Shown here piece by piece: positions 2,791 through 60,439 of a DNA stretch of 64,000 bases. Both the position numbers and the translations under genes were made by a program. How positions within the stretch are numbered: the stretch's first letter is position 1; each line of letters begins with the position of its first letter. Origin of the DNA: Setoptus koraiensis (lineage: Eukaryota > Animalia > Arthropoda). The notes under the pieces are model-generated. The model did not search any database. It was not told the DNA's origin and worked only from the letters and a program-made list of their open reading frames with translations. Location: contig CM106585.1 of assembly GCA_048013815.1 (NCBI GenBank), positions 10,974,001 through 11,038,000 on the forward strand. Direction: 5' to 3'.

Positions 2791-4099
2791 CAACCGATTG
2801 CGAGCGACCATCACAAATGCCGGCCAGCGAAACGCCGGCCAGCGAAATGCTAGCGATCGACTGGCTGGCCATCGAATGGCTGGCCATCGACAGGCGAGCT
2901 GCGTCGAGACGCCGCTGAATTCGCTCACTGAAACATTGACTCATGACTCATTGACACTTGTCGTCGAGACTGATGAAGATGTGCCAATGCCGTCCAGTGC
3001 ACGCTGTCCATTGTGCACAGTCGACACACTTGTATATATTATTATGTCATTATGCAAATGACTACTTACACCAATGAATCAACGATGCGACCCAATGAGC
3101 CAACAATGAATGACACACACACACACACATCATATAATTGTGAACGGTAGCACGGTGGCCTCATATGATTGCATCATTGCGTCATCGTGTATCGTTCATT
3201 GATGAAGTGAAAAATTCACAACAAGAAAAGTTAAATAAGTAAACGAGACCAGGTGAGACAACAAAACACAGACAGCTTATTGAATATCTACTTTCGCTCG
3301 TCCAGTGGTCACCTGTTGACTGTGTTGACTGTGTTGCCATGCTGTCATGTTGCTGTTCTCACATGTACAAGTTATATGATGTAAGTTGATTCATCGAATG
3401 TGTGGCCACTGTGCGATACTTACTGCACGCTTATATGCAAATCATTGGCCCACTTGGTGGCCGCAACTGGACGACTGGACCATTCGACCTCTCGACCAGT
3501 GTGGCTCTCGACCAGTGTGGCACTCGACTACTGGAGCACTGGACAGGTGACATACAAACAAACAAACACTTGGCACACTACACGACAATTTGCTTCTAGT
3601 TCAGTGCTTCTTTTTAGCCTCGTTGGCCGCAAAGCCGACGCAGCGACAAATGTCCAAAGAAGCGACTAGCCAACTGAGCCGACGGTCGTCATTAACCTTC
3701 AATTAACTCGTAAAGTTAACCTGTAAATTGTGAGCCAATTGAAGTTGCTCCAGTGACACCGCCGGCAGCCAACGATTTCAAAAGGACACTTTCAACTGCA
3801 CACATACTGACCAAATTGTACAATTGACCATACAGTCAGATGATCTGATTATCAGTTGATTTAATTTGGCCAGCTCAACTGAAGATTTCACAGCTCACTC
3901 AGGCAACTTGTTGGCCGCTACTGCCCACACTACAATGCACTAAACAATAGACTTATATCAGATAGATAATGGATAGTCGTCAACAAGTGACAGCCACAAT
4001 TAAGCATGCCCTAAGCATCCCCTATCGAAAGTAACAGCCAGCAAACGATCAAATGAGATCAAATTACAGCTTCAATTTAATTAGTTGTTAGTAAGCTCT

Positions 4100-24573: not shown

Positions 24574-25380
24574 TTAATTTTGGTTTGATACCTTCAAGTT
24601 CATCTGATCAAGAAGCTCGTTTTGCTGTTGTTGTTGCGTACTTCGCGCCCCAGGCACATAACCCGATCTTAACAGACTGTTTATCCTATCGATAGACTCG
24701 AGATCCTTGGCCTCTTCGAGCGCTGCTCTGGCCTCCTCGATGGCCCTCTGTTGTCTTTTCTCATGTGAGTCATAATCGTCAACTTCAACCATCTTCTCGG
24801 TGTAGTCGTCATCCTCTTGTTGGTCAGATATCGAAGAGAAGGCTTTTGATTTGATTCGCAATTTAGCCAGCAACGCTTGGCCTTCTTGTCCAGAGAATAG
24901 TTTATTGACTTCTTCGCGTTCCTTACTTTTGATTTTCTTGAAATCTAATAAACGCAGATGAGAGAGTTGGTGGATCACGTATTGTCGGTAATATTTTTTA
25001 GAGGCGACAGGATTATTTATCAAACTTAAAACTCTTAAATTGGTTAGTGTCATCAATGGGTCAATGTCTCCCAGCTCCTGAATATAATTATTGGTTAATA
25101 TTAGTCGCTCTACTTGTGGAATTGATTCATGTAATCCTTGAGATATTTGTGAGATCCTATTATTGTTTAGTAAGATGCATCTCAGACGAGGTAAAAGTGG
25201 AAAGTTTTCTAGTTTCCTGATATCATTGTCAGACAGATCAAAGCAGTCAAATTGATTGAGTGTGGCTCCCAGGTTTTCGATATTAGGTATCTTGAGTGAT
25301 CTGAGCCTCAGTTCTCTATCTGATGTGGCACGATTAGTATATTGATAGGAATTTTCGATGAGGTCAGGCGTGATTCGCAT
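24574..25380 (-). CDS. SNRPA1: U2 snRNP protein A' (leucine-rich repeat), intronless CDS, 268 aa
   Basis: MRITPDLIENSYQYTN...RELRLRSLKIPNIENLGATLNQFDCFDLSDNDIRKLENFPLLPRLRCILLNNNRI...LRLLDFKKIK matches U2A'. Start taken at ATG 25380. Confidence 0.97.
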   Translation of the reverse strand: MRITPDLIENSYQYTNRATSDRELRLRSLKIPNIENLGATLNQFDCFDLSDNDIRKLENFPLLPRLRCILLNNNRISQISQGLHESIPQVERLILTNNYIQELGDIDPLMTLTNLRVLSLINNPVASKKYYRQYVIHQLSHLRLLDFKKIKSKEREEVNKLFSGQEGQALLAKLRIKSKAFSSISDQQEDDDYTEKMVEVDDYDSHEKRQQRAIEEARAALEEAKDLESIDRINSLLRSGYVPGARSTQQQQQNELLDQMNLKVSNQN

Positions 25381-25730
25381 TTTGATCTTAAGGTGACTGT
25401 TACACAAAAAGTTAATAAATTTAATGTTCTAAACCAGACCGTAATTAAAAATTAATGATCCCAACAATTAAATGTGGTTTGTATCTACTTTTCAGAGTGG
25501 GACCTTGAGAGCGAAATTCAAAAAAAAAATCTCGAGCCAAATATGCCTCAAAATGCATTACTAAAGCTTTATTTCAAATTTGACGCCGTACGCTTGTATA
25601 CTAGACTAGAAACCCCAACACATGTAATTACAGAATGATAATAATAATAAACTCGCAATTTTATCAGGCAGCTCTGTAAATTTTTATTATCTTTCGCCTC
25701 GAACTCTAACTACACAATCAAACTTTCATC

Positions 25731-28700
25731 ATGGATCGTCGAAACCAGTTCAGCCTGGTAAAATCCCAGGCCAATTATTTATTTGAGGGTGACTTTCGAC
25801 GTAGACCGGCTCAAAATTTATCTGGAGCAAGCAGAAGCTTAGCCAGGATGGAATTACTTCAGCAAGCTGCAGAGCAAAGGAGAAGCAGGGAAGATAATCG
25901 ACGCAGAGAAAGTGCAGCCCTCATAATCCAATCATGTTGGAGAAAATACAGATCTAATAATGCTCATGTAAGTTAATTTGTTTTGAACCCCGTCTCTTTA
26001 TTTTCTTACAGACACTGTGACACAGCAATGTATCTTATCCAAATTTGCAGGGTTCGACCATGAGATCAAATTTTGACAATCTAGTCAATAAGGTGGGACG
26101 GCGGGGCATAACTGAGGAAGAACTAGAATCTGTTGTTCCAGCCTTCCTTATTTTCTTCAGAGCTTCGAAGGACCAGGATAGACTCATATGGATAAGTAAA
26201 AAGATCCTGATCGATCAAAAGCGTATCACTCAATTGTTACAAACCATGCATCACAGATGGCTCTACAGGATATGTAAACTGCTTCATCTAAATCTCAATT
26301 TATTAAATGAATCCTGCATTGGTAATAGACCCATTGCAACGCAATTACGTATCCTAGAAGTGTTTACGACGGAATCTATCTACACTCCCCCGAAGAACAA
26401 AACCAATGCGGACGACAACTCCGACTCAATGCAATTTGAACCTGAAAGTACTTCAATCTTACGACTATCAATGGTTTGGAGAATTCTGATAAAGAGTAAG
26501 CTATTTAGTATATTAAGGAAGCTAGTAGATCAACGTGTTCCGGTTCCATCCGAATCCACCATAAATCCGCCTACAGAACTTGCCCAATCTCTGGCTGAAT
26601 TGATTAGACATGCCCTGGATTGGCCATCTGCTGACCATCAGTCACGATGTTTGCTCATAGGCTCTTTCTTGGGAGAATTCTTTGCTGGCCCATTGAGCCC
26701 CCAAGTAGACCTGTTTTTCGCACCGTATCTTGCCTATCATATGCCTACGAATCTCAGAGCTATAAATTTGGTTAGTGTTTTGAGAGGACCCTTCCCTGAA
26801 ACAATAAGACTCTACACGGACGGCCAGGAGAAAATTTGGGATAGCGAAATGCTCGATCCCTCGGACAAACCATCATTTGAACCCTATCAACATCTAATTT
26901 GGATGTGTCACTCTTTCTTGAAACTAATCCATCGAAACGTTGCTAGACTCAGTGAGGACGATGCACACTCATACCTCCTTATTTTGAAGGCATTCATGGT
27001 GCCAGTTACATTTTTTTCAGAATTATCATTCATCAATCAGACCAACGACGATGATCCAGAAGAAGAATACTTTGAAGATACTACTGAAATGTCTGACGCT
27101 GTCTGGTCTTATTCTAGAAAACCAAGAGACCAAACTAATAACATAGATGAGGCAATATCAAGAATGATAAGCTCTCTAAATGAACCTAATCACGTGGATT
27201 TCTTGATCAATCTGATAGCACCAGCTAAGGATGTTGATAACAACGCGCGAAAGAATGTATCCTTCACTCAATCTTTCGATGCAATCGTCAAGATTTGCTA
27301 TCTTATGCTTACTCATGAACATCTTGCAGTATTCGAATGCCGCCTACTGTACACTTTGGCCTTCAGACCTACATTCTTGAGACAGCTTTGGAGATATATC
27401 CTTACCGCCGCTAGCCCTTGCTTATTTGGTAACCCTACGCCAGTATATTCTATGTTGGCCCGTGGGACCAATATTGGACCGGAAGTCTGGCCTCTTATAG
27501 TTCCTCATTTGAGCTTATTCTGTTCTTTGTTCAGTTATCTTTTGCCTACTTTAGATGACGAGGAATTTTACGAGATCAGTAAGAATGATTTGATACTCGA
27601 AGTAGCTGCCGGAAAGCAACGACATAATACAAATAAGCGTAATAGTTCCATGCCATTCAAAGTAAGCAACGAACTTGTCTTAATCTGCTCCACTTTACGT
27701 GATATATGTGTTGGTCTAGTTGAGATTACCTATCAAGATCAAAGACCGGGGTATATGAGAACAGCCGACTGGTCAAATCAAGATGTACACACCAAGTTAT
27801 TTTCTAGACGGGCTGAGGGCCTTTTTAGAACCATAGTGAGGCTCGTCAGACAGTTACATTTACGCGATTCCAGGCGCCAATTCTGTCCAGAAGGTATGTA
27901 TCTTTCACAATTCGTAATTTGAAAACTATCAATCTCTTCGTAGTATTCATGATTTTTTTTTTTTTTGAAAAAATGACACGAAATAATAAAATTTAGGTCA
28001 TTGGATTAGCCCAAGTGTGCAAATACCGCCTAGTAAAAGAATTGACTTTGAGGCTTGTATTAATTTCAGGAAAAGATTCTTCCGTTATGGAGCATTTAGG
28101 CACCTCACTAGGGAGGAGCTAGAAACGGAAGGTAACTATTTACATAATTTAAGATCTATTCAAATACTCTTCTTTTCTTATAAAAGTAAATCTAATATGA
28201 TGAATTGCTCTTGTTCGATCATGATTGAAAGGTCCCTCAATGGTTTCAAGTGATATTAGAACTGTGGTGATACTCCAAGAGATACCGTTTGTGGTATCAT
28301 TCCATGATCGTGTTCAAATACTTCATTGTCTAATGGCCAAAGACAAAAAATCACATTATACCGAAGCCTATCATTTTGGTTTACCCGGTTCAACTATTCA
28401 AGTCCAAATTAGACGTAATTATATTTATGAGGATGCTTTCGAGAAGTTGTCGACTATCAACCAACCAAACTTGAAGCCACCTCTTCGTGTTTCCCTAGTC
28501 AATGCAGTAGGATTAGATGAGGCTGGCATCGACGGGGGTGGATTATTCAAAGAATTTCTTGGAGAATTACTTAAAACAGGCTTTGATCCAAATAGAGGCT
28601 TTTTCCGGTCAACAAAAGATCAACTATTATACCCTAATCCATCTGCTAAAATTCTGTTTGCTTCGAGTAGTCAGGGATACGATCAGCATTATGAATTCCT

Positions 28701-29490
28701 CGGCAGGATGCTAGGAAAGGGTATATATGAGAAGATTATGATAGAACTTCCACTCGCAACATTCTTCCTAGCCAAACTATTAGCCCGCCATTCAGCATCT
28801 GATGTAGATATTCACAATCTAGCTTCATTAGACCCCGTATTGCACAAAAATCTAGTATATTTGAAAAATTATCAAGGTGATGTCGCAGACTTGGGACTGG
28901 ATTTCACGATTGCTAATAATGAGTTAGGCGAAAACGAGATTGTCGAGCTGAAACCTGGCGGCTCAAAGATCGCTGTTACTGCCCAAAATAAGATAGAATA
29001 CGTTCACTTAGTTGCTGATTATCGTCTCAACAAACAAATACGTACTCAATGCGCTGCATTTAAAAGAGGTTTGTCTCAATTGTTGGATATCCACTGGATT
29101 AGAATGTTTGATCCGAAAGAATTACAGATATTGATCTCTGGTACACCTACAGCGATAGACTTGGATGATTTGCGTAGAAACACACATTACGCTAATGGTT
29201 ACACGGACACAGACTCAGCAATAGAAATATTCTGGCGTGTCATAAAGCAATTTGAGGAAAACCAGAAGAGAAAATTGCTCAAATTTGTAACATCATGCTC
29301 GCTACCCCCTCTTCTAGGCTTCAAAGACTTGGTGCCTCAGTTTACCATAGCACCAACTGAACCAACTAGATTGCCATCTGCTTCTACTTGTATGAATTTG
29401 TTGAAGTTGCCTAGATGCGAGGACGAAGGTAGCATGAAATCAAAGATTAGCTATGCAATTGAATTTAATTCAGGATTTGAATTAAGTTGA
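25731..29490 (+). CDS. UBE3C: HECT E3 ubiquitin ligase UBE3C-like with IQ motif, 4 exons, about 1157 aa
   Basis: Exons 25731-25967, 26051-27893, 27997-28131 and 28232-29490, all GT-AG and in frame. N-terminal FEGDFRRRPAQNL, IQ motif IIQSCWRKYR, HECT AGIDGGGLFKEF, catalytic RLPSASTCMNLLKLP, C-terminal GFELS. Confidence 0.95.
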
Positions 29491-42307: not shown

Positions 42308-44350
42308 ATCAACAACAACAGCGACAGCAGCAGCGTCAGACTGCAAGACAATGCTACTTGGGGCCGAAATGTGCAAACGTCGTATCGCAACATAACGGCG
42401 ATATGTATATCCAATTATCGAGCGGCGTTGTTGTTGCCATCGCGCCGCTAATTGACAGTTATCAGTTGTGGGCCCCGGGGGCGACTCACGTCGCGTTACA
42501 GGGCAAATTATTGCAACATAGATAATGATTGCTCCATCTTGGCATTGGCGGCTCGGTATTTGTGGCGCATCGCCAGTCACATCAGTTCCATTTGTTGCGA
42601 CAGCAATAAGCCAACAATAAAATTCGCCGCCCAAGCAGCCATTATAAAGTCAACATTATAAAACAAATGAAATGCCAGAAATCGCAAAAATGTGTCGGGC
42701 CCACTGACACATTCTCCCAGCGGCTTTTTGGGCAAAAGCTGCTTTCGGGCGGCTCTCGGGCGGCTCTCGGGCTGGTCCCGCGAAAAGAATGAATTATTCA
42801 TTGCTCGGCGAGCACACTGTAGCGATCACAATGGCCATCGAAACCGCATTCCATTAGTATGGAGATTATACACTATGTAGTGGTCATTTAAATTGCTTTC
42901 TAACACACCCCATCCAACTGGACAAGTGATGATGCCTCAATCACTCTCTGATTTGCCCCAGTTGGTTCAGCAGCAAATTCATTAGCCAACGCGGCTGGCT
43001 GCTCATTGAAGGAGATCGCTCTCTCATTATGTTAAATGGGTAGGCATTAGTTATTCGGTCGCTATATAATTCAGATACAATGTCCTTGGCCGGATCACTG
43101 TCGCATTGATCAAACTTGCACTGATCAGGCGAGAGTTAAGTTGCCCTAGGTTACCTTGTCAAGTTGACGAAGGCCGTGCTACTGATAATGGTGACACTTT
43201 TATAAATGATTGATTGATTGTTGTCGCAAGTTGTCAGCAACTTGGCGGCTAGTCCATTCACCATTGATCGCGCCTCCTGGTCTCATGATTCACATCAGGC
43301 GTGATCAATGGACCAAGCGATCAATTTACTCTTATCAGTTCGCATTCACGCCAGCTAACTTATTAGCTAACTCAACAACAATTGCATAGTAAATTGCATA
43401 ATAAAGAATAAGATAATAAATAAATAAGCGATAAATTGAGAGTCGCAGTTTGGGCCGGAAAATAAAGTGAAAATTTCATGTACGCGTTCGAAATAACTTT
43501 TGCATGTCCCAGCGCTATTCATCGATGAACAATTGATGTTCACACGAGAATAGCATCATTGGATATTGATTCTTTTAGTATGGCTGTCTCTGCTAGCGCA
43601 ACTATCACCATTAAGCATACTTTGTTTTAGCCGGGTCACTCGAAATCACTATAAGGTCGAAAGAGGACTCGAAACGTAACTGTCACCGAGGTGCGCAATT
43701 ACCACACTCTCAACACACAAGTCCCCGGCAGTGACACTCAGAATACACCGACAAGAGTCTTCTTGAAGTCTCCTGTGTACCAGCACCGAGAAAAAGCTAA
43801 TCTCGTTCCCAACGAAAGATCGAGATTTTTCTTCAATTATTCAAGTATTTTCTGCAATCGAACCGCCTGTCTGGATTCACAACTGTCGTTTCAGCATCCG
43901 CGGATGATGCGTTTGATTGGTTGATCATGTGTGGGTAAATCGACGTATTTCGACGGTATTTCAGGGGTATTGCAAGGGTAATGAAGGGTGTTCACTGGCA
44001 ATTTTTTGATCATTTGATGCTTGAGCGATGTTTTTTGGGCCCAGTTGTGATGCCTGCCAGTGCAAATATCATTGTATCATATCATTTTCAAAAATACAGC
44101 AATGGAAAGACCAGAGAGGGTCGTGGCTCATGAATTATAAACCGGAAACAGATATAAACCAGATTCTTTGGTTCTCTACAACGAAGCCGTATTTTTGAAA
44201 ACGAAGACACGAAATAAAAACATCCGGAATTGGACAACCCCTTGCTGCTAACAGTACGGGTGCTGACCAGAAAATTGAGCATGAAAATATATTCGAGAGA
44301 AAAAACGATATTTTCTGCTGACAATAGCTCGAAAATGTTCAAGCCCTGTT

Positions 44351-44356
44351 TTTATT
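44351..44356 (-). terminator. Poly(A) signal of secreted-family paralogue 1
   Basis: AATAAA on the minus strand about 105 nt after the stop. Homologous TTTTTATTC(A/G)TA context at 52531-52536 (paralogue 2) and 58396-58401 (paralogue 3). Confidence 0.6.
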
Positions 44357-44461
44357 CATATCATATCATGCGATTCATATGAATAAAAGGTCCATTCCAT
44401 CCTTTTCCTCGCTTATAGAATTTTCATCTACGCTCAACCGAACCTTTCTTGAACCAGATTT

Positions 44462-45487
44462 TTATTTCTCTCGCTGGGCTCTTTCTGGCTGGAATCCGCA
44501 ATCAAGTTTCTCGCTAATACACCAGATTTTGTCAGAAGTTTCAAATTTCTTTGGTTCTAATTCCTTGTTTAGCTCGTCACTGAGCACTTCGTTCGACAAG
44601 CTTTCAGGTACTGCACTGCTTGGAGAACAATTTAGTGCTTTTAAACCTTGGCAGTATTGGACAGCTTTGAGCCACTGACTGACTATTGGGCTGGTCCTCA
44701 ATTTATTGTCTGTAACATCGTCATCATCTCCGGCTCTAAAACCATAGAAAAATAATCTCATAATGGGATGGATTGAGTTTTGCGCATAACTATCAATCAA
44801 TTGGCAAGATCGCTTAACATTCACAAACTGTTCAGCCATTTCTTGGCTATCCAAACTATGGGATTTAGCACCAGATTTAGACAACAGATCGCTCGCTATA
44901 ACGATGTCCTCTGGTAGATCGACTTCGGATGGATCGACTTCGATTAATTTGCTAATGATTTGGTCATTTTCTACAGTATCCAAGCTCTGTTTGACGGCCT
45001 CGTCAGATTGCTCTGCCTCCTCTAGTTTCTCCTCTAGGTTTTGCTTGCAGGTTAAAATAATTTGACCATATAGGAATGCTGTGAATTTTAATAATCCATG
45101 ATCACGGTTCTGTTGAACGGATCGAGATTGCTTGCCATTTATGCGTTTGTTAAATTGCACCAATTCCTCGATGATATCTGATCCGCACACAGAATGTGTT
45201 GCTCTAACGTCTTCAACTAATTCGTTCAGAGCTCTCACATCTCCGACACCGTCAAAACTGTTCAAACAGTTGTTGATGAGCTCAGTAGTGGGCTTGCTAC
45301 CTAGCCCCGGTGTCTCTTCCATCTCTCTTGCCAATTCTCTGACCTCCAACAGTGATTCGACCTCATCGACTCTTTCCAAGCAAAGTTCCTCCGACGACGT
45401 CCATAGTTCCCCGGCTAAACTGCCGGGCAGGAAACCGCCAACGACGCCTACGATCAGTAAAAAAGACAATACTTGTTGCACTGACAT
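44462..45487 (-). CDS. Secreted six-cysteine protein of unknown family, paralogue 1 (341 aa)
   Basis: Intronless ORF; hydrophobic N-terminus MSVQQVLSFLLIVGVVGG (signal-peptide-like); aligns end to end with 52655-53725 and 58453-59517; TATA box and AATAAA present. Confidence 0.9.
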   Translation of the reverse strand: MSVQQVLSFLLIVGVVGGFLPGSLAGELWTSSEELCLERVDEVESLLEVRELAREMEETPGLGSKPTTELINNCLNSFDGVGDVRALNELVEDVRATHSVCGSDIIEELVQFNKRINGKQSRSVQQNRDHGLLKFTAFLYGQIILTCKQNLEEKLEEAEQSDEAVKQSLDTVENDQIISKLIEVDPSEVDLPEDIVIASDLLSKSGAKSHSLDSQEMAEQFVNVKRSCQLIDSYAQNSIHPIMRLFFYGFRAGDDDDVTDNKLRTSPIVSQWLKAVQYCQGLKALNCSPSSAVPESLSNEVLSDELNKELEPKKFETSDKIWCISEKLDCGFQPERAQREK

Positions 45488-45560
45488 CTTGATTTGAATT
45501 TTTATTCGGGGATTATAGAAGACTGTAGTCTGTTAAGTCGTGCAAGTCTCACTGCTCATT

Positions 45561-45945
45561 GACTGTTATCGGACTACCGGTGATCTCATCCCTATTTATA
45601 CGAGATAAAAAAATGTTTGCTCAAACAATCTACGTAGAAAAATTCTGTTTTTAGAATGCTATATTATCATCTGATGAATATGAGTAGAGTGAGTAGCAAC
45701 ATTCCAAACATTTTTGAAAATTTTTATCCCAAAAATACTTATTCTGGCTGGAACAACCATTGAAAATTTCTCTTGTTGAACAGTTTCTATCACCAGTGAC
45801 ACACGAAAACACGAAAATTGCCGACCAAAAAACATTTCGGAGAGTTGTTTTTCAAAAATGAAATGTTTTCGCCCCTTTGTCTGACATTTGGCTTGACATT
45901 TACCTGGATGACGTTTTTCAACATTTGTCAATATTTTGCTGTGTA
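45561..45945 (-). promoter_or_regulatory. Conserved upstream cassette of paralogue 1 (TATA box plus shared motifs)
   Basis: TATAAATAGGG (TATA at 45593-45600), ACAGTC Inr-like about 27 bp downstream, and a TTTTTAGAATGCTATATTATCA block. Homologous to 53830-54215 and 59610-59870. Confidence 0.7.
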
Positions 45946-45989
45946 TTTTGAGCTGCAGTTGCAACTGTGACGTTGATGGCAGACAATAG

Positions 45990-46352
45990 TCGGAACTACG
46001 CAACCATACCTTATTTTCGAAAATAGAAGGCAGAAAATGGAAGCAACACAGTTGGACTGCCTTTCAATTTATTGTCTGTAACATTCCCGGTGTCGCCGGC
46101 CTTGGTACCTTTGTAAGCTCAGCTCACAACCGGAAGTCCTCTGTATCCAAGGAATGATCGTCCAGTTTACGGACCTTGGTTGTTCAAACGAAGAAAAACT
46201 GGTTTCTCGCACGCATGGGCTTAGCCTACAGAGATTTCTAGGCCGGAGACACCGGGAATGTTACAGACAATAAATTGAAAGGCAGTTCAATTGTGGTGCT
46301 TCCATTTTCTGCCTTCTATTTCCGAAAATAAGGTATGGTTGCGTAATTCCGA
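45990..46352. repeat. Long inverted repeat (hairpin) partly derived from secreted-family coding sequence
   Basis: Arms 45990-46102 and 46240-46352, 113 bp each, ungapped, 6 mismatches, plus about 25 bp of more diverged inner pairing. The inner parts of the arms translate to G.KAGDTGNVTDNKLKGSP.V, homologous to all three paralogues. Confidence 0.93.
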
Positions 46353-46838
46353 ATTGCTGCTAAATACTATCCGACGCTGCGAGGCAGCGGATTTAGCATC
46401 ATCAGCGATTATTAGCGTCATTACTATCCCTAGCAAGTTGTGAGCATAGTTGCCTGCGCTGTCCAGTGGCGGCGCTCGTCAATTGATAATTGATAATCAA
46501 TAATTGATTAATGAAGCAAGTCAAGTTTGCAAGCCAATTTCATTTGTTTGTATCGACAGAGGCTTTCGATGGTAGCCGGCCCCTCGGCGGTTTGAGCAAA
46601 CAGGCCCCAAATGTGCCCCCGCAATGAAAAACAAAGCGGGTCTTGCCAGAGGGTCTTTGTTTTAGTTTGTTTTGCTTTGCTGCATTATGCATGTCAGGTG
46701 CATCGAGCTCATTGCACTTGATATTTGCATGTTGTGCAGTTGTCACGTGAAACAAACAAAAAATGAGCGCGTTGCAATTGGACACTGGCCGCCCGACATT
46801 CAATATTGTTATTTACTCGAGTCAACATCGCCAACAGC

Positions 46839-46871
<33 letters not shown>

Positions 46872-49013
46872 AATAATAACAACAACAACAACAACAGCGG
46901 CAGCAGCAGCAACTAATACGTGCCACGTAACACGCAATACGTAATATTGTGCATTACGCAACACGGCTCATATTGCATAGTGGCGTATGAGTGCACTTGA
47001 GTGAATGGTCATTGTTCTATTGAAATCAACCGGACAAATAATGGTATTTCTGTGGCCACACACACACACACACACACAAAGCCAACTTATATTACACGAT
47101 GGCTACTTTTTGGTAAATGACCATTGTTAGTTGTAAGTAGTTGCAGCTGATGTTGTTGTTGTTGTTGTTGTGTCTATTCATCATTAGCTGGCAACAAGCG
47201 CAAGTATATAAGTGGCTCCCATTGTCTTCTACCTGTCCTGTCCGCGACAACGGACACCACCGCACACAGACAGCATACGGCACCAACTCTCTGCCGCTGT
47301 CACTTATACCCAGATATACCCATATGGCACCGATATGGAACCCAACGGGGTTATATTAACGCTTATAACGGCATATCCGCATGTAACAACAGTCGAAACT
47401 TGACCAGCGTCGCATAATGGCCGCTGATGGAATGCTTGTACATGCCAAATAGGGCAGATATGGATCAGGTATGGCTACCTGTATACGAGTGCTGTATGTG
47501 ATATATGCGCTATGTGTTATGTGTGATATATGCGCTATGTGTGATATACGGATACATACATATGAAACATGTATGCACCGGGCCGGCAGGTAAGCCGCTT
47601 ACTCGCTGGCCAAGACAGTCGAGTTGCCGGCGACAAGCGTCCACTTGGCTTTTGCACAGAACAAAGAACCGGCTTGCCCGTGTGTCACCATATGGAGCTT
47701 ACCTGGTCATCTGGTCATCTGGTCACCTGGTCACCTGGTTGGCTGGTCACCTGTCGTGCTTTTTGTGTGTGTGTGTGCCTTCCCCTTTCCCCTTTCGCGT
47801 TTTCTCGACTCGTCTCTTCTATTGGCTCGTTGGTGCGTTGCATCATGTCACTACAGTCACCAAGCCAAGTCATGCCAAGCCACGCATTTGGCGAGCTTAC
47901 CGTAACGGTTGTCGCGTTGCTGCCGTTGCTGTGGCCGTGACTGCCCAGTGGCCACTCAATAATGTCTGTGGCCATCAACTTGACCACTGCACTGCTGCTA
48001 TTTGTGTGCACAGTGTGACTGCTGCGCCATTCGATTGCCGGGCACTCACCGCGCCGCGTTCAGTTATGGCCAGTTCAGTTACCGCCGCGTTCAGTGGTGA
48101 GCGGGCGCGGACGCGGGCCCGCTACCGATACCGCACCCGCGCCACTGGTCACCATTGCAAATAGATAATAATCTCTCTCTCTCTCCGTGTTGCATCACTC
48201 ACATAGCCAGTAGTGTGCTGCGGCATACATAGTATACATAATATGCAACGTAATATCCGCCGCTGCCGCTGTTTGTGTGAGCGGACTCCAGCGGCGGCCG
48301 TGCATATGTTTACCTGGCGCGTGTTGTTGCCGGCCGCGTCCATTAGCGGCCGGCAGCAATTCGGCCGCGTTTGTCAACTATGTCGCTTTGGCCAGTGGGT
48401 GCACAGGGCAAAATTGTTGTTGGCTTCGGTCGTCCAAAATCAATTACGTCGCCAGCAGCGCCAACAACAACAACGACAGCGACAGCAGCAACGACAACAG
48501 CGACAACAACAGCTACAACAACCATGGCAGCAGCAGCAACAGCGACAAAAACAACAACAGCAACAGCAGCGACAAGCTCGGTGACATTGGCCGGCACGGG
48601 GCGCCGTTTGCGCCATATGCCGGTCAGACAAGCAAACAAACAAACACACTCGGGCTGTGTTTGCGGTGCACTCGACGACACGGCCGCCAACCGGGACAAG
48701 ATCCCGTTGACTTTGGCCAACGGGTCGCTTGGCCGCGACACACAGGTAGCTGGCGCCACTGTGCTGGTACTGTACCAAAATACCTGTGCAAACCAGAGTC
48801 TGCTTACCAGACTCTGGACATAAAGCGGACATGAAGCGCAAAATATAATTTGCGCAATATATAATTTGATTGTGTGTACGTACAATAAAATGCGAATTTG
48901 CGGCCGGAAGGCAGCAAATCAATATCTCGTCGTCGTTGCCACTAACAGCCAGCGGGTACATAGCGACTATTTATTTATATATGTCACATACATAAACATA
49001 CATGTTTATATGT

Positions 49014-51834: not shown

Positions 51835-52219
51835 ATTGTCATTGGCACGCAAATAATAATAATGTTGTTTGTGCTAGGGCCCAACTTTGTTGTTGCGCTG
51901 TCTTTGTTTTGATGTCGCTGCTGCGCGCCACTTACAAATAGCAAATTACCAAAACTATGTGATTGTCTGCTTGTCCAGCTACGTGCCGACGTCTACTCTG
52001 CATCCGGTTTGCTGTCTGAATCAACTAATTGTGTCGTCTTCGCGCTGCGCTAACCGTATGCAGCCGACACTGCGGCGTGTGATGAATGATGATTCCCTCA
52101 TCATTATTAATCATAATTAATTTCGCTTATAACCCTATTTTGTTCATAAGTGATGGCTCAGCACGGCCAGTCGAAAACACTCAAGCGGCGCCTTTTCAAC
52201 TTGCATCATGTAAGCGTCT

Positions 52220-52264
52220 GCTTTTCGCTCTTCGGCCCCGGGATCGGGCCGAAGAGCGAAAAGC
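52220..52264. repeat. Perfect 19-bp inverted repeat with 7-nt loop
   Basis: GCTTTTCGCTCTTCGGCCC / GGGCCGAAGAGCGAAAAGC. Confidence 0.9.
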
Positions 52265-52654
52265 CGAAACCGAAATAAGCGACCGGGAGAGTGCGAGCGG
52301 CGACCGAGCGAGCGGCCCGCGGGAGCAAAACCTCCCGGCCACTCCGATTCCGTCTTTTGATCCACCGAACGAGACGCATTAAGCCGTCTCCGAGAACCAC
52401 CTAGATTCGGTCGAATCGGCGAGCGGTCGAATCAGGAAGTGATCGAATGAAGAAATGGTCGAATCGCGAAAGCACGTCACAAGATGAGAGCCTCTGGTGG
52501 CGAGAGCCCGAAAAATTTTCGCACACTTTTTTTATTCATATGATACTGACAGACGGCTTCGTATTATCGCTCGCAAGAGCCCGCGATTAAGCCTGCGATT
52601 AAGCCTGTCCGTGGCCGTATGGAGGCAGCCCCCAGATTGCGCTCCATTCCGCGC

Positions 52655-53725
52655 TCAGTCATCCCACTCTGACCCCTCCGAATCTGAATCCGAATCCGAC
52701 TCTGGTTCCGGTTCCTGCGGTACGAATTTGCTCACGAGATCCGAACCAATTTCGCTGACATGCTCGGTCACATCGAAGGTCTTTGGCTCCAAGGCACCGT
52801 ACAGGCTTTTGGGTACTGCCTCCCACGGGCGGAATATTGTTATATCTACACCGAAGCAATATTGAATAGCCTTGAGCCAGTGGCGCACTCTTGGGCTGCT
52901 CGCCAATTTGTTGTCAGCAGCATCGCCGGTGTCGCTGGCCTTGTAACCGGAGTACGATAATTTCATAACCGGATAGACTGAGTCTTCAGCATAACTATGG
53001 ATCAATTGGCAAGATCGCTTGAGCTCCACAAACTGGTCAATCAATTCTTGATTGTCCAAAGGAAGGTAAATTGGTTTGTCTGGTGCATCTCCGCCGCGTT
53101 TGAATAATAAAAAGCCCGATGGTTCAATATTCTGCGGCAGATCAACGTCTAACGAAGTCACATGGGCGTCGACAATATGACGAACAGTTTTATCATTTTC
53201 CACAACTTCGAAGCTCTTTGTGAGATCCTCGCCGCCTGATTGTTCTGCTTGCTCTAATTTTGTTTCGACGCTTCGCTTGCAGGTTAGATTAATCTGGCCA
53301 TATAGCAATGATGTGAAATGAAGCAATCCATGAGTTGTTCTGTCCTCCTTGGCTCGAGATCCATAATTTTGAATGTGATCGTTGAATTCCAGCAACGCAC
53401 CAACGAAATTCTTTTCGCACACAGAATGTACTGTTTGCGCTCGTTTAACAATTTCGTACAGATCCCACACATCTTGCTGACCATCATAACTCTGCAAACA
53501 TTCATTGACGATTTCAGTTGTCTCTTTGCTCTCCAAGTTTGGTGTTTGTTCAAGCTCTTTTGCAAATTCTACGAATTTCGCCACTGAGTCGATGGATTTT
53601 ACTCTGCTCTCGCAAAGTTCCTGCGACGATGTCCATAGCTGTCCCGAGCCGGCGGAAATGCCAGCAGCGCAACAACCAGCGACGCCCACGATCAATAAGA
53701 AGAATGACACTTGTTGTACAGACAT
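52655..53725 (-). CDS. Secreted six-cysteine protein of unknown family, paralogue 2 (356 aa, acidic tail)
   Basis: Intronless ORF MSVQQVSFFLLIVGVAG...; same six Cys motifs; C-terminus EPEPESDSDSDSEGSEWDD. Confidence 0.9.
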   Translation of the reverse strand: MSVQQVSFFLLIVGVAGCCAAGISAGSGQLWTSSQELCESRVKSIDSVAKFVEFAKELEQTPNLESKETTEIVNECLQSYDGQQDVWDLYEIVKRAQTVHSVCEKNFVGALLEFNDHIQNYGSRAKEDRTTHGLLHFTSLLYGQINLTCKRSVETKLEQAEQSGGEDLTKSFEVVENDKTVRHIVDAHVTSLDVDLPQNIEPSGFLLFKRGGDAPDKPIYLPLDNQELIDQFVELKRSCQLIHSYAEDSVYPVMKLSYSGYKASDTGDAADNKLASSPRVRHWLKAIQYCFGVDITIFRPWEAVPKSLYGALEPKTFDVTEHVSEIGSDLVSKFVPQEPEPESDSDSDSEGSEWDD

Positions 53726-53829: not shown

Positions 53830-54215
53830 AAATGTCAGCCCTATTTATACGAAATCGAAATTTTGTTCCTTCGAGGAGCCATATTTGAGGAGCTCTATTT
53901 TTACATTGCCATATCATCATTTGACGATCACAAGCAGATCACTTCATGCGCATGAACAGCGAAAGTGGCAGCATTCGAGATATTTTTAGGAATTTTTATT
54001 TTGAAAAAACCTGGTCCATCTGAAACAATCGTCGGAAATTTCCCTTGTAAGGCAGTTTTTCCATCAGCGCTGCTGCATGAAAAGATGAGAAAATTGCCAC
54101 ATGAAACATTTCAGAGCTGCCTGTCAGAATTGAAATATTTTCGTCACCTGTCCGGGCCATTTGACATTCACCTAACCTTGAAATGTTTTCTGACGTTCGC
54201 AAACAATTTTTGATT
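53830..54215 (-). promoter_or_regulatory. Conserved upstream cassette of paralogue 2
   Basis: TATAAATAGGG (TATA at 53842-53849), TTTTTACATTGCCATATCATCA, and further blocks collinear with the paralogue 1 upstream region (AAATTGCC..AAACATTTC, TTGACATT.ACCT). Confidence 0.7.
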
Positions 54216-57849: not shown

Positions 57850-58207
57850 GTAAAGTATAGTGTTGCTGGGGCCCCACTCGGCCCCACTGTTGAGGCACAG
57901 CTTGCAGCGTTGCACACGTGACGGCGCACCGATGCACCGGCAGCAGCAGCATCAGCAGCAGTTTTGCAGTTTTTTGTTCGCCTGCACTTGTCAAATGATC
58001 GGTTACGTCATGAGAAGCGGCGTCATGAAGTTGTTGTTGTTGTTGTTGCTGTCTTCATGTGTCGTGACTTGTGGCTTATGTTTGTGTGGTTGCCAGGGCA
58101 CGGCAGGGCAGGCTAGTGATCGGGCCAGCCTCCCTCCTCCCGGGCGGGAGCGCGGAGCAAAAAGGGGAGCGAAATTTCAGTCGCTCCCCCCCGATCACCA
58201 CGATTTG
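57850..58207. repeat. Left arm of about 355-bp inverted repeat flanking paralogue 3
   Basis: Reverse complement of 60087-60439, from GTAAAGTATAGTGTTGC to CCGATCAC(C/T)ACGATTTG; differs mainly in repeat-length variants and scattered substitutions. Confidence 0.93.
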
Positions 58208-58452
58208 CGCCGGGTCTAAATTGCGAGCCCAGCCAATCTTAGATGATGTAAGTTGCAATCACAGATCAGCAGTTAGAGTCCCCATCTACCTAATGAGATG
58301 CGAAAAGCTGGACCCCACAACTGGCCAGGAAATTGAGTATGAAAACAAAATCGAGAACAGGAATTAACACCTCCAGAAAATGCTCAATCCTTGTTTTTAT
58401 TCGTATCATACGATTGATATGAGCGAAAACCTCATATAATGCTGCCCATCGC

Positions 58453-59870: not shown

Positions 59871-60086
59871 TGGACGGAAAGCAAGATTTCAGCTGTTCCC
59901 CCGCTCACTGGGGTCGCCCCAACATGACAAAAACGTCACAACGAGAGCAACTTTACGACAGATAGTAACCAAGGCCAGCTCGAGCCACAAAAGTCGCTTC
60001 TTCGTGTTCTTCTGTTGTGAGCTGGCTTGCCATCCGACACACACACACGAGCATCTGTGATTATTAATATGCTCGGGCCTTGCGCA

Positions 60087-60439
60087 CAAATCGTAGTGAT
60101 CGGGGGAGCGACTGAAATTTCGCTCCCCTTTTAGTCCCGCTCCCGCCCGGGAGGAGGGAGGCTGCCCTGATCACTAGCCTGCCCCGTCATGCCCTGGCAA
60201 CCACGCGAACATAAGCCGCAAGTCACGACACATGAAGACAGCAACAACAACAACAACAACAACAATTTCATGACGCCGCTTCTCATGACGTAACCGATCA
60301 TTTGACAAGTGCAGGCGAACAAAAAACTGCAAAACTGCTGCTGCTGCTGCCGGTGCATCGGTGCGCCGTCACGTGTGCAACGCTGCAAGCTGTGCCGCGA
60401 CAGTGGGGCCAAGTGGGGCCCCGCAACACTATACTTTAC
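60087..60439. repeat. Right arm of about 355-bp inverted repeat flanking paralogue 3
   Basis: Reverse complement of 57850-58207. Confidence 0.93.

Follow-up and report, generated by a model that had tools for sequence, protein, structure and literature searches.

The window analysed here, a stretch of 64,000 nucleotides from Setoptus koraiensis, contains three intronless paralogues, all on the minus strand, that belong to a family of secreted proteins with six cysteines. Paralogue 1 (44462-45487, minus strand) encodes a secreted protein of 341 amino acids and is transcribed, with an RNA-like contig at 44444-45552, while paralogues 2 and 3 start at 53725 and 59517. Compared by tblastn, the three proteins are 41-45% identical to each other. 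The genes also have in common a TATA-containing promoter block, in which similarity extends, at paralogue 1, out to about 45790, and the TATA-containing motif of paralogue 1 (45590-45603, minus strand) is identical in paralogue 2 at 53839-53852. The family has no Pfam domain, and exact-protein look-ups with paralogues 1-3 and with two open reading frames overlapping the hairpin described below returned no record. A profile search of 1.8 billion proteins and a feature search of the ESM atlas brought up about 30 relatives, all of them proteins from raw assemblies without names. The AlphaFold model of the family, built on an alignment of 24 sequences, is a confident prediction of an all-alpha structure (pLDDT 89.3, pTM 0.85). 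Foldseek found no match for it in the PDB or in the AFDB clusters, the best hits having an E of 0.4-0.8 and a TM of about 0.2.

Anatomy of the hairpin upstream of paralogue 1

Outside the conserved promoter block, and starting 503 bp upstream of the start codon of paralogue 1 (ATG at 45487), lies a long inverted repeat at 45990-46352. The inverted-repeat search delimits two arms of 137 nt each, 45990-46126 and 46216-46352, which are 90% complementary and separated by a spacer of 89 nt (46127-46215). Compared base by base, the arms differ at 14 positions, without any gap, and these mismatches are unevenly spread: the outer 113 nt have 6 of them (107/113 identical), whereas the inner 24 nt alone have 8 (16/24 identical), a difference in density with a Fisher p of 0.0004. 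Arm identity thus steps down from 95% in the outer zone to 67% in the inner one and to about 32% in the next 19 nt. The only stretch of the stem free of mismatches over 39 bp is 46056-46094. An earlier note on this DNA, made from its letters, had described two ungapped 113-bp arms with 107 identical positions, about 25 bp of looser inner stem and a loop of about 90 nt, some 500 bp upstream of the ATG and beyond the promoter; our counts are the same and our measurements agree with its approximate figures.

As RNA, either strand of this sequence folds into one long hairpin, with a dG of -235.6 and -238.3 kcal/mol for the two strands and z-scores of -22.6 and -24.6 relative to dinucleotide shuffles. 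The fold brings in about 10 additional nt that pair, with bulges, beyond the arms (about 45979-45989 with 46353-46361). Hairpin RNAs (hpRNAs), as defined in Drosophila, have an extended duplex, and the fold of 45990-46352 is likewise much longer than that of a pre-miRNA.

Apart from low-complexity sequence, the whole window holds two inverted repeats of at least 35 nt. One is the hairpin; the other encloses paralogue 3 and its promoter between arms of about 360 bp (57850-58210 and 60084-60439, 336/367 identical, 91.5%). These flanking arms show no target-site duplication and no homology to the family or to anything else except a CAA-type simple repeat. The identity of this second inverted repeat, in the range of 91.5-96%, is near that of the outer stem of the hairpin, which suggests, as far as sequence divergence can date them, that inverted duplications of similar age occurred in this cluster. 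Because the repeat around paralogue 3 is of similar age and yet not derived from the family, the region would seem to make inverted duplications regardless of their sequence content. Some 390 bp beyond the stop codon of paralogue 2 (ORF end 52655), on its downstream side, there is a small GC-rich palindrome (52217-52267; 54 nt, 85%); when it is counted, each of the three paralogues has an inverted repeat nearby.

Family origin of the arms and the shared 21-mer

Residues 241-269 of paralogue 1, used as a tblastn query, match both arms (E 3e-4 and 6e-3), and the family fragment reads in coding sense on the minus strand of the left arm and on the plus strand of the right arm. The homologous block is a relic of about 95 nt at 46046-46140 (minus strand), corresponding approximately to paralogue 1 residues 238-269 and with a stop codon inside. 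Aligned without gaps at the DNA level, 46140-46046 is identical to paralogues 1, 2 and 3 at 59/95, 65/95 and 57/95 positions (60-68%), and in alignments anchored on this block the identity to the family is random on either side of it. Stop codons are present in both arms, at differing positions, and the minus-strand reading of the left arm that the earlier note had given, beginning PVVS*, is correct as written. The arms therefore hold a fragment of a fourth, diverged and dead member of the family. The proposal of such an origin made in that note thus stands, with the qualification that the fragment comes to only about 95 nt and that the arms are chimeric: the outer 57 nt of each arm (45990-46045 on the left, mirrored by 46297-46352 on the right) have no detectable homology to the family and do not derive from it. 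A second protein alignment, in which 'KAVQLC' in another frame was set against 'KAVQYC' of the family, was rejected as a coincidence that overlaps the better ungapped DNA alignment.

The extent of the homology and the divergence of the arms give an order to these events. Family homology stops abruptly at 46046 and arm identity continues for another 57 nt, so the duplicated unit was already chimeric. Over their outer 113 nt the arms are 95% alike, whereas their identity to the intact paralogues is just 60-68%; the duplication is therefore far younger than the split of the fragment from the family. The left arm is probably the original and the right arm its copy, because family homology extends for about 14 nt past the left arm only: it continues from that arm without interruption into the left edge of the loop (46127-46140), and the corresponding positions at the right edge of the loop agree with the family at 4/13 informative sites, which does not exceed chance. 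When the differences between the arms are polarised by the paralogues, about 6 derived changes fall in the right arm and 4-5 in the left, which fits an independent neutral decay of both arms.

The relic includes a run of 21 nt, at 46064-46084 and in the mirror copy at 46258-46278, that is exactly identical to 44698-44718 in paralogue 1 (minus strand), as the earlier note had observed for both arms. This 21-mer sits within the mismatch-free stretch of the stem. In Drosophila, hpRNAs are also recognised by homology of the arms to their target with full complementarity of siRNA length, and here such complementarity exists for this one 21-mer, against paralogue 1. Among the 21-nt registers of the hairpin, one matches paralogue 1 perfectly, two with 1 mismatch and two with 2, and paralogue 2 is matched at best with 3 mismatches and paralogue 3 with 4. 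In paralogue 1 the 21-mer encodes VTDNKL, the best-conserved motif in that region of the protein. A codon comparison found one synonymous site (AAT) unique to the hairpin and paralogue 1, the remaining states being kept also by at least one other member. Perfect runs of 20 nt also occur between intact paralogues, where no hairpin is involved (paralogue 1 with 2, and 2 with 3); a run of 21 nt is thus within the reach of common descent in this family, and the match is weak evidence for targeting.

Related species and transcription

The window's U2A' gene and a UBE3C-type HECT exon (24574-25407 and 28225-29490) have oribatid mites as their best named relatives (Oppia nitens, 51%; Medioppia subpectinata, 65%), the other named species listed reaching at most 57%. 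These relatives place the genome with the acariform mites and not with the insects, and the Drosophila frame in which the earlier note had placed the hairpin is therefore the wrong one for this organism. Many of the genes consist of one long exon.

A closer relative is represented by the sequencing run SRR33593474, whose species is about 83-85% identical in nucleotide sequence over 8 kb, syntenic to 22-30 kb of the window. Its housekeeping proteins are 95-98% identical to those of the window, whereas its closest members of the secreted-protein family reach only about 44-48%, so this family evolves, to judge from the sequences compared, very fast. In SRR33593474 the family genes form head-to-tail tandem pairs 600-750 bp apart (1094-2203 and 2945-3718 in locus L001; 840-1922 and 2534-3136 in locus L002), whereas the three members in the window lie 6-8 kb apart and are accompanied by inverted repeats. 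In its three family loci (L001-L003) and its syntenic locus (L004), none of which is orthologous to the region upstream of paralogue 1, there is no inverted repeat of at least 30 nt and no hairpin-like sequence. With arms that diverge by 5%, against a nucleotide identity of about 83-85% between the two species, the duplication is much younger than the species split.

Transcription was examined by searching sequencing runs by 31-mer words and placing the resulting contigs on the window. Two runs, X6 and X7, are RNA-like, and their sole contigs, 44444-45552 and 44402-45485, fit the unit of paralogue 1, whose transcript is expected to start near 45570, as its TATA motif would predict. Across 45553-47400, which takes in the hairpin, its loop and the flanks, both runs have a depth of 0; they are shallow runs (paralogue 1 word depth 7-12) whose tissue is not given. 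A query made of the hairpin alone returned none of the 8 runs that contain paralogue 1 words (X6, X7 and X9-X14, of which X6 and X7 were shown to be RNA-like). Beside the hairpin there is no copy of the family-type TATA promoter motif, and Rfam 15 has no match anywhere in the window. The nine transitions among the arm mismatches are compatible with G:U pairing on the plus strand in 5 cases and on the minus strand in 4, a split without bias, so neither strand appears to have been protected as the transcribed one. In wild-type Drosophila, primary hpRNA transcripts are scarce and RNA-seq reads are depleted over the duplex arms (PMC10317233). Because of this, and because the runs are few and shallow and of unstated tissue, the absence of the hairpin from the RNA assemblies is weak evidence. 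For the idea that the family carries its own cis-linked silencing hairpin, as the earlier note had it, the result is mixed: the family origin and the 21-mer hold, and silencing itself is somewhat disfavoured by the zero depth in X6 and X7, the missing promoter motif and the even wobble split.

Explanations for the hairpin and its place among known systems

In our judgement the locus is probably a young inverted duplication of a chimeric piece, generated by fold-back or template switching, and at most a proto-hpRNA; the hairpin as it stands is probably inert. A fragment of the fourth, dead member, of which about 95 nt are left, would have become linked to an unrelated stretch of about 57-68 nt before the duplication, and the resulting piece of 137-148 bp would then have been duplicated locally and in inverted orientation by fold-back or template-switch repair or replication, the left arm being the older copy and the right arm its inverted duplicate. 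Since that event, or since a final episode of gene conversion between the arms that took in the outer 113 nt, the two arms would have accumulated substitutions at similar rates. If transcribed, the hairpin would give a near-perfect dsRNA of about 140 bp, which could be a substrate for Dicer. The locus has the short spacer, the single-copy status, the absence of a target-site duplication and the seemingly independent decay of the arms that go with fold-back or template-switch duplication. The observation that sits least easily with this account is the abrupt fall in identity between the outer and the inner stem: 6 mismatches in 113 nt against 8 in 24 are not predicted by a single neutral duplication and need gene conversion, a mutation bias close to the loop, or selection on pairing. 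The earlier note had read the better-kept outer stem as a sign of homogenisation or selection; the difference is real, and gene conversion explains it equally well. By analogy with known cases, a hairpin that lies beside a living paralogue and has a 21-mer in its best-paired stretch is arranged like a newborn hpRNA, and this counts against the inert reading.

Two other explanations are bound up with the copy number and integrity of the locus. The size of about 363-383 bp and the inverted symmetry over the full length are like those of a transposable element of the MITE or foldback type, which would here have captured a gene fragment, and another inverted repeat encloses paralogue 3. Such elements leave target-site duplications and dispersed copies. 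No duplication is found at 45990/46352 or at the extended boundaries of about 45978 and 46361, and the window has no second copy of the hairpin. Run X1, which is DNA-like, with a flat depth of about 127 across genes and spacers, has contigs over the hairpin at a depth of 102-104, compared with 112-127 in the flanks, that is, at single-copy level; dispersed copies were judged from this depth and from the window. Exact scans of metagenomes with two 23-mers of the hairpin gave 0 matches. A transposon is thus very unlikely, and the high-copy 363-bp unit with target-site duplications that the earlier note had named as the finding that would overturn its proposal is not what is seen. The palindrome might also be a spurious fold-back join in the assembly, of the kind that chimeric long reads can create, yet three overlapping or abutting short-read contigs of X1 (which may be the assembly's own sample) tile 45761-46821 with zero differences, and run X4, labelled as another organism, contains 0.93 of the words of 44300-46450; we regard an artefact as scarcely credible. 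A gap in run X2 at 45776-46284 was considered as a sign that the hairpin is absent there and was rejected: depth around it is about 4, and gaps of similar size occur elsewhere in that run.

A further explanation is a functional hpRNA gene, transcribed and cut by Dicer along its stem of about 140 bp, with an siRNA from 46064-46084 that would direct Argonaute to cleave the mRNA of paralogue 1 at 44698-44718; an RNA-dependent RNA polymerase (RdRP) might, in a mite, amplify the signal. The long and near-perfect stem speaks for it, as do arms taken from family coding sequence next to a living member, the position of the 21-mer within 39 bp free of mismatches, and the better preservation of the outer stem. 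There are precedents as well, in Dsim-hp58 beside its parent gene and, in the account given by the same paper, in the hp-pncr009 hairpins among their 825-Oak targets (PMC10317233), and dust mites do have Dicer-dependent siRNAs together with RdRP (PMC5805368). Against it stand the RNA-like runs, which assemble paralogue 1 but give no contig over the hairpin, its loop or its flanks, the negative hairpin-only query, the lack of a nearby promoter motif and of a wobble strand bias, and the absence of a hairpin from the three family loci of SRR33593474. The match to the target is also thin, with a single perfect register against paralogue 1 and, at best, 3 mismatches to paralogue 2 and 4 to paralogue 3, in a 21-mer that encodes the conserved VTDNKL, has one uniquely shared synonymous site and belongs to a family whose members have 20-nt runs in common anyway. 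On balance we think a functional hpRNA gene unlikely and doubt that the hairpin works as a silencer; the fuller proposition, that a recent hpRNA of an oribatid-like mite silences paralogue 1, possibly with amplification by RdRP, and that its outer stem is kept by selection, seems to us somewhat more doubtful. Less probable again is that the hairpin is what is left of two older family copies placed head to head, or of an older and larger palindrome, whose arms have largely decayed and in which a later conversion tract re-homogenised the outer 113 nt. Such a history would account for the stepwise fall of arm identity from 95% to 67% and about 32%, for the coding sense of both arms, which points away from the centre, and for regional inverted repeats of similar identity (91.5-96%). 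However, both arms have the same 57 nt of non-family sequence at their outer side and end symmetrically, which one chimeric duplication fits better, and the right side of the loop resembles the family only at chance level.

The hairpin belongs to an already known kind of object. Small inverted duplications formed by fold-back or template switching, and palindromes maintained by gene conversion between their arms, are known (Tanaka & Yao 2009, as cited in PMC8728187). The hairpin is like them in its adjacent inverted copies, short spacer, single-copy status, patchy arm identity and lack of a target-site duplication, and differs in that microhomology at the junction is unreadable because the inner stem has diverged. 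In D. simulans, the newborn hpRNA hp58 lies next to CG17385/GD25683, the gene from which it arose (PMC10317233). Like hp58, our hairpin is a young inverted repeat of a coding-exon fragment, placed near the gene that it resembles and with fully complementary stretches. Unlike hp58, it has arms only 60-68% identical to the living genes, a single perfect 21-mer and a mite-like chelicerate host, and it is hp58, not the Setoptus hairpin, that is defined by Dcr-2-dependent siRNAs, a rise of the primary transcript in dcr-2 mutants and derepression of its target. In D. melanogaster, according to the account of Wen et al. 2015 in PMC10317233, hp-pncr009, hp-CR32205 and hp-CR32207 are interspersed with the 825-Oak family. 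As in that case, the window contains a clustered, fast-evolving family with a family-derived hairpin among its members. The 825-Oak hairpins, by the same account, are expressed in testis, produce abundant siRNAs and are conserved between species, whereas the window has one hairpin, known from its sequence, with no counterpart at the three family loci of SRR33593474.

Plants provide long inverted repeats (LIRs) derived from adjacent paralogues, such as the rice germin-like protein LIR in LIRBase (PMC8728187) and the soybean CHS inverted repeat, as cited there. Here too family sequence is duplicated in inverted orientation and could yield siRNAs against other members, but the arms of the plant repeats consist of whole genes and are hundreds to thousands of nt long, and these repeats feed the plant DCL pathways. 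LIRBase also lists 297,317 inverted repeats with arms longer than 400 nt in 77 invertebrate genomes (PMC8728187), and since such repeats are very common, an inverted repeat by itself says little about function.

As for the host, a hairpin transcribed in a mite would plausibly be processed, because mites have Dicer-dependent siRNAs and RdRPs, the case documented being that of dust mites (PMC5805368). A literature search on mites found no endogenous hpRNA in these animals. The RNAi of mites has a different wiring, which includes RdRP, and some mite lineages have lost piRNAs. Should the hairpin yield siRNAs, the model known from Drosophila, by which hpRNAs originate from their target genes and are located among them, would extend to mites. 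With a working hpRNA, chelicerates would have their first described endogenous hpRNA-target module, and the birth of silencers from the target's own sequence would become a general arthropod process that reaches beyond the testis conflicts of Drosophila. If the hairpin is inert, in our view the likelier case, it illustrates cleanly the material out of which such regulators arise, and together with the other inverted repeats of the cluster it suggests that this genome tends to duplicate pieces of genes in inverted orientation.

Some minor observations concern the surroundings of the hairpin. About 130 bp to its right, at 46478-46515, there is an AT-rich block of overlapping motifs of the TAATTG/ATCAAT type, which resemble homeodomain sites and are partly palindromic. 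Inside paralogue 1, the segment 44874-44953 exists in a second form, with 7 differences in 80 nt, that has equal depth in X1 (127.7 of 254.8) and is the sole form in X2. One contig of X1, at about half depth, joins 45493 to 45752 and so skips the promoter of paralogue 1, its shorter side being just 22 nt. The second form and this join could come from another, diverged haplotype or from a near-copy at some other place.
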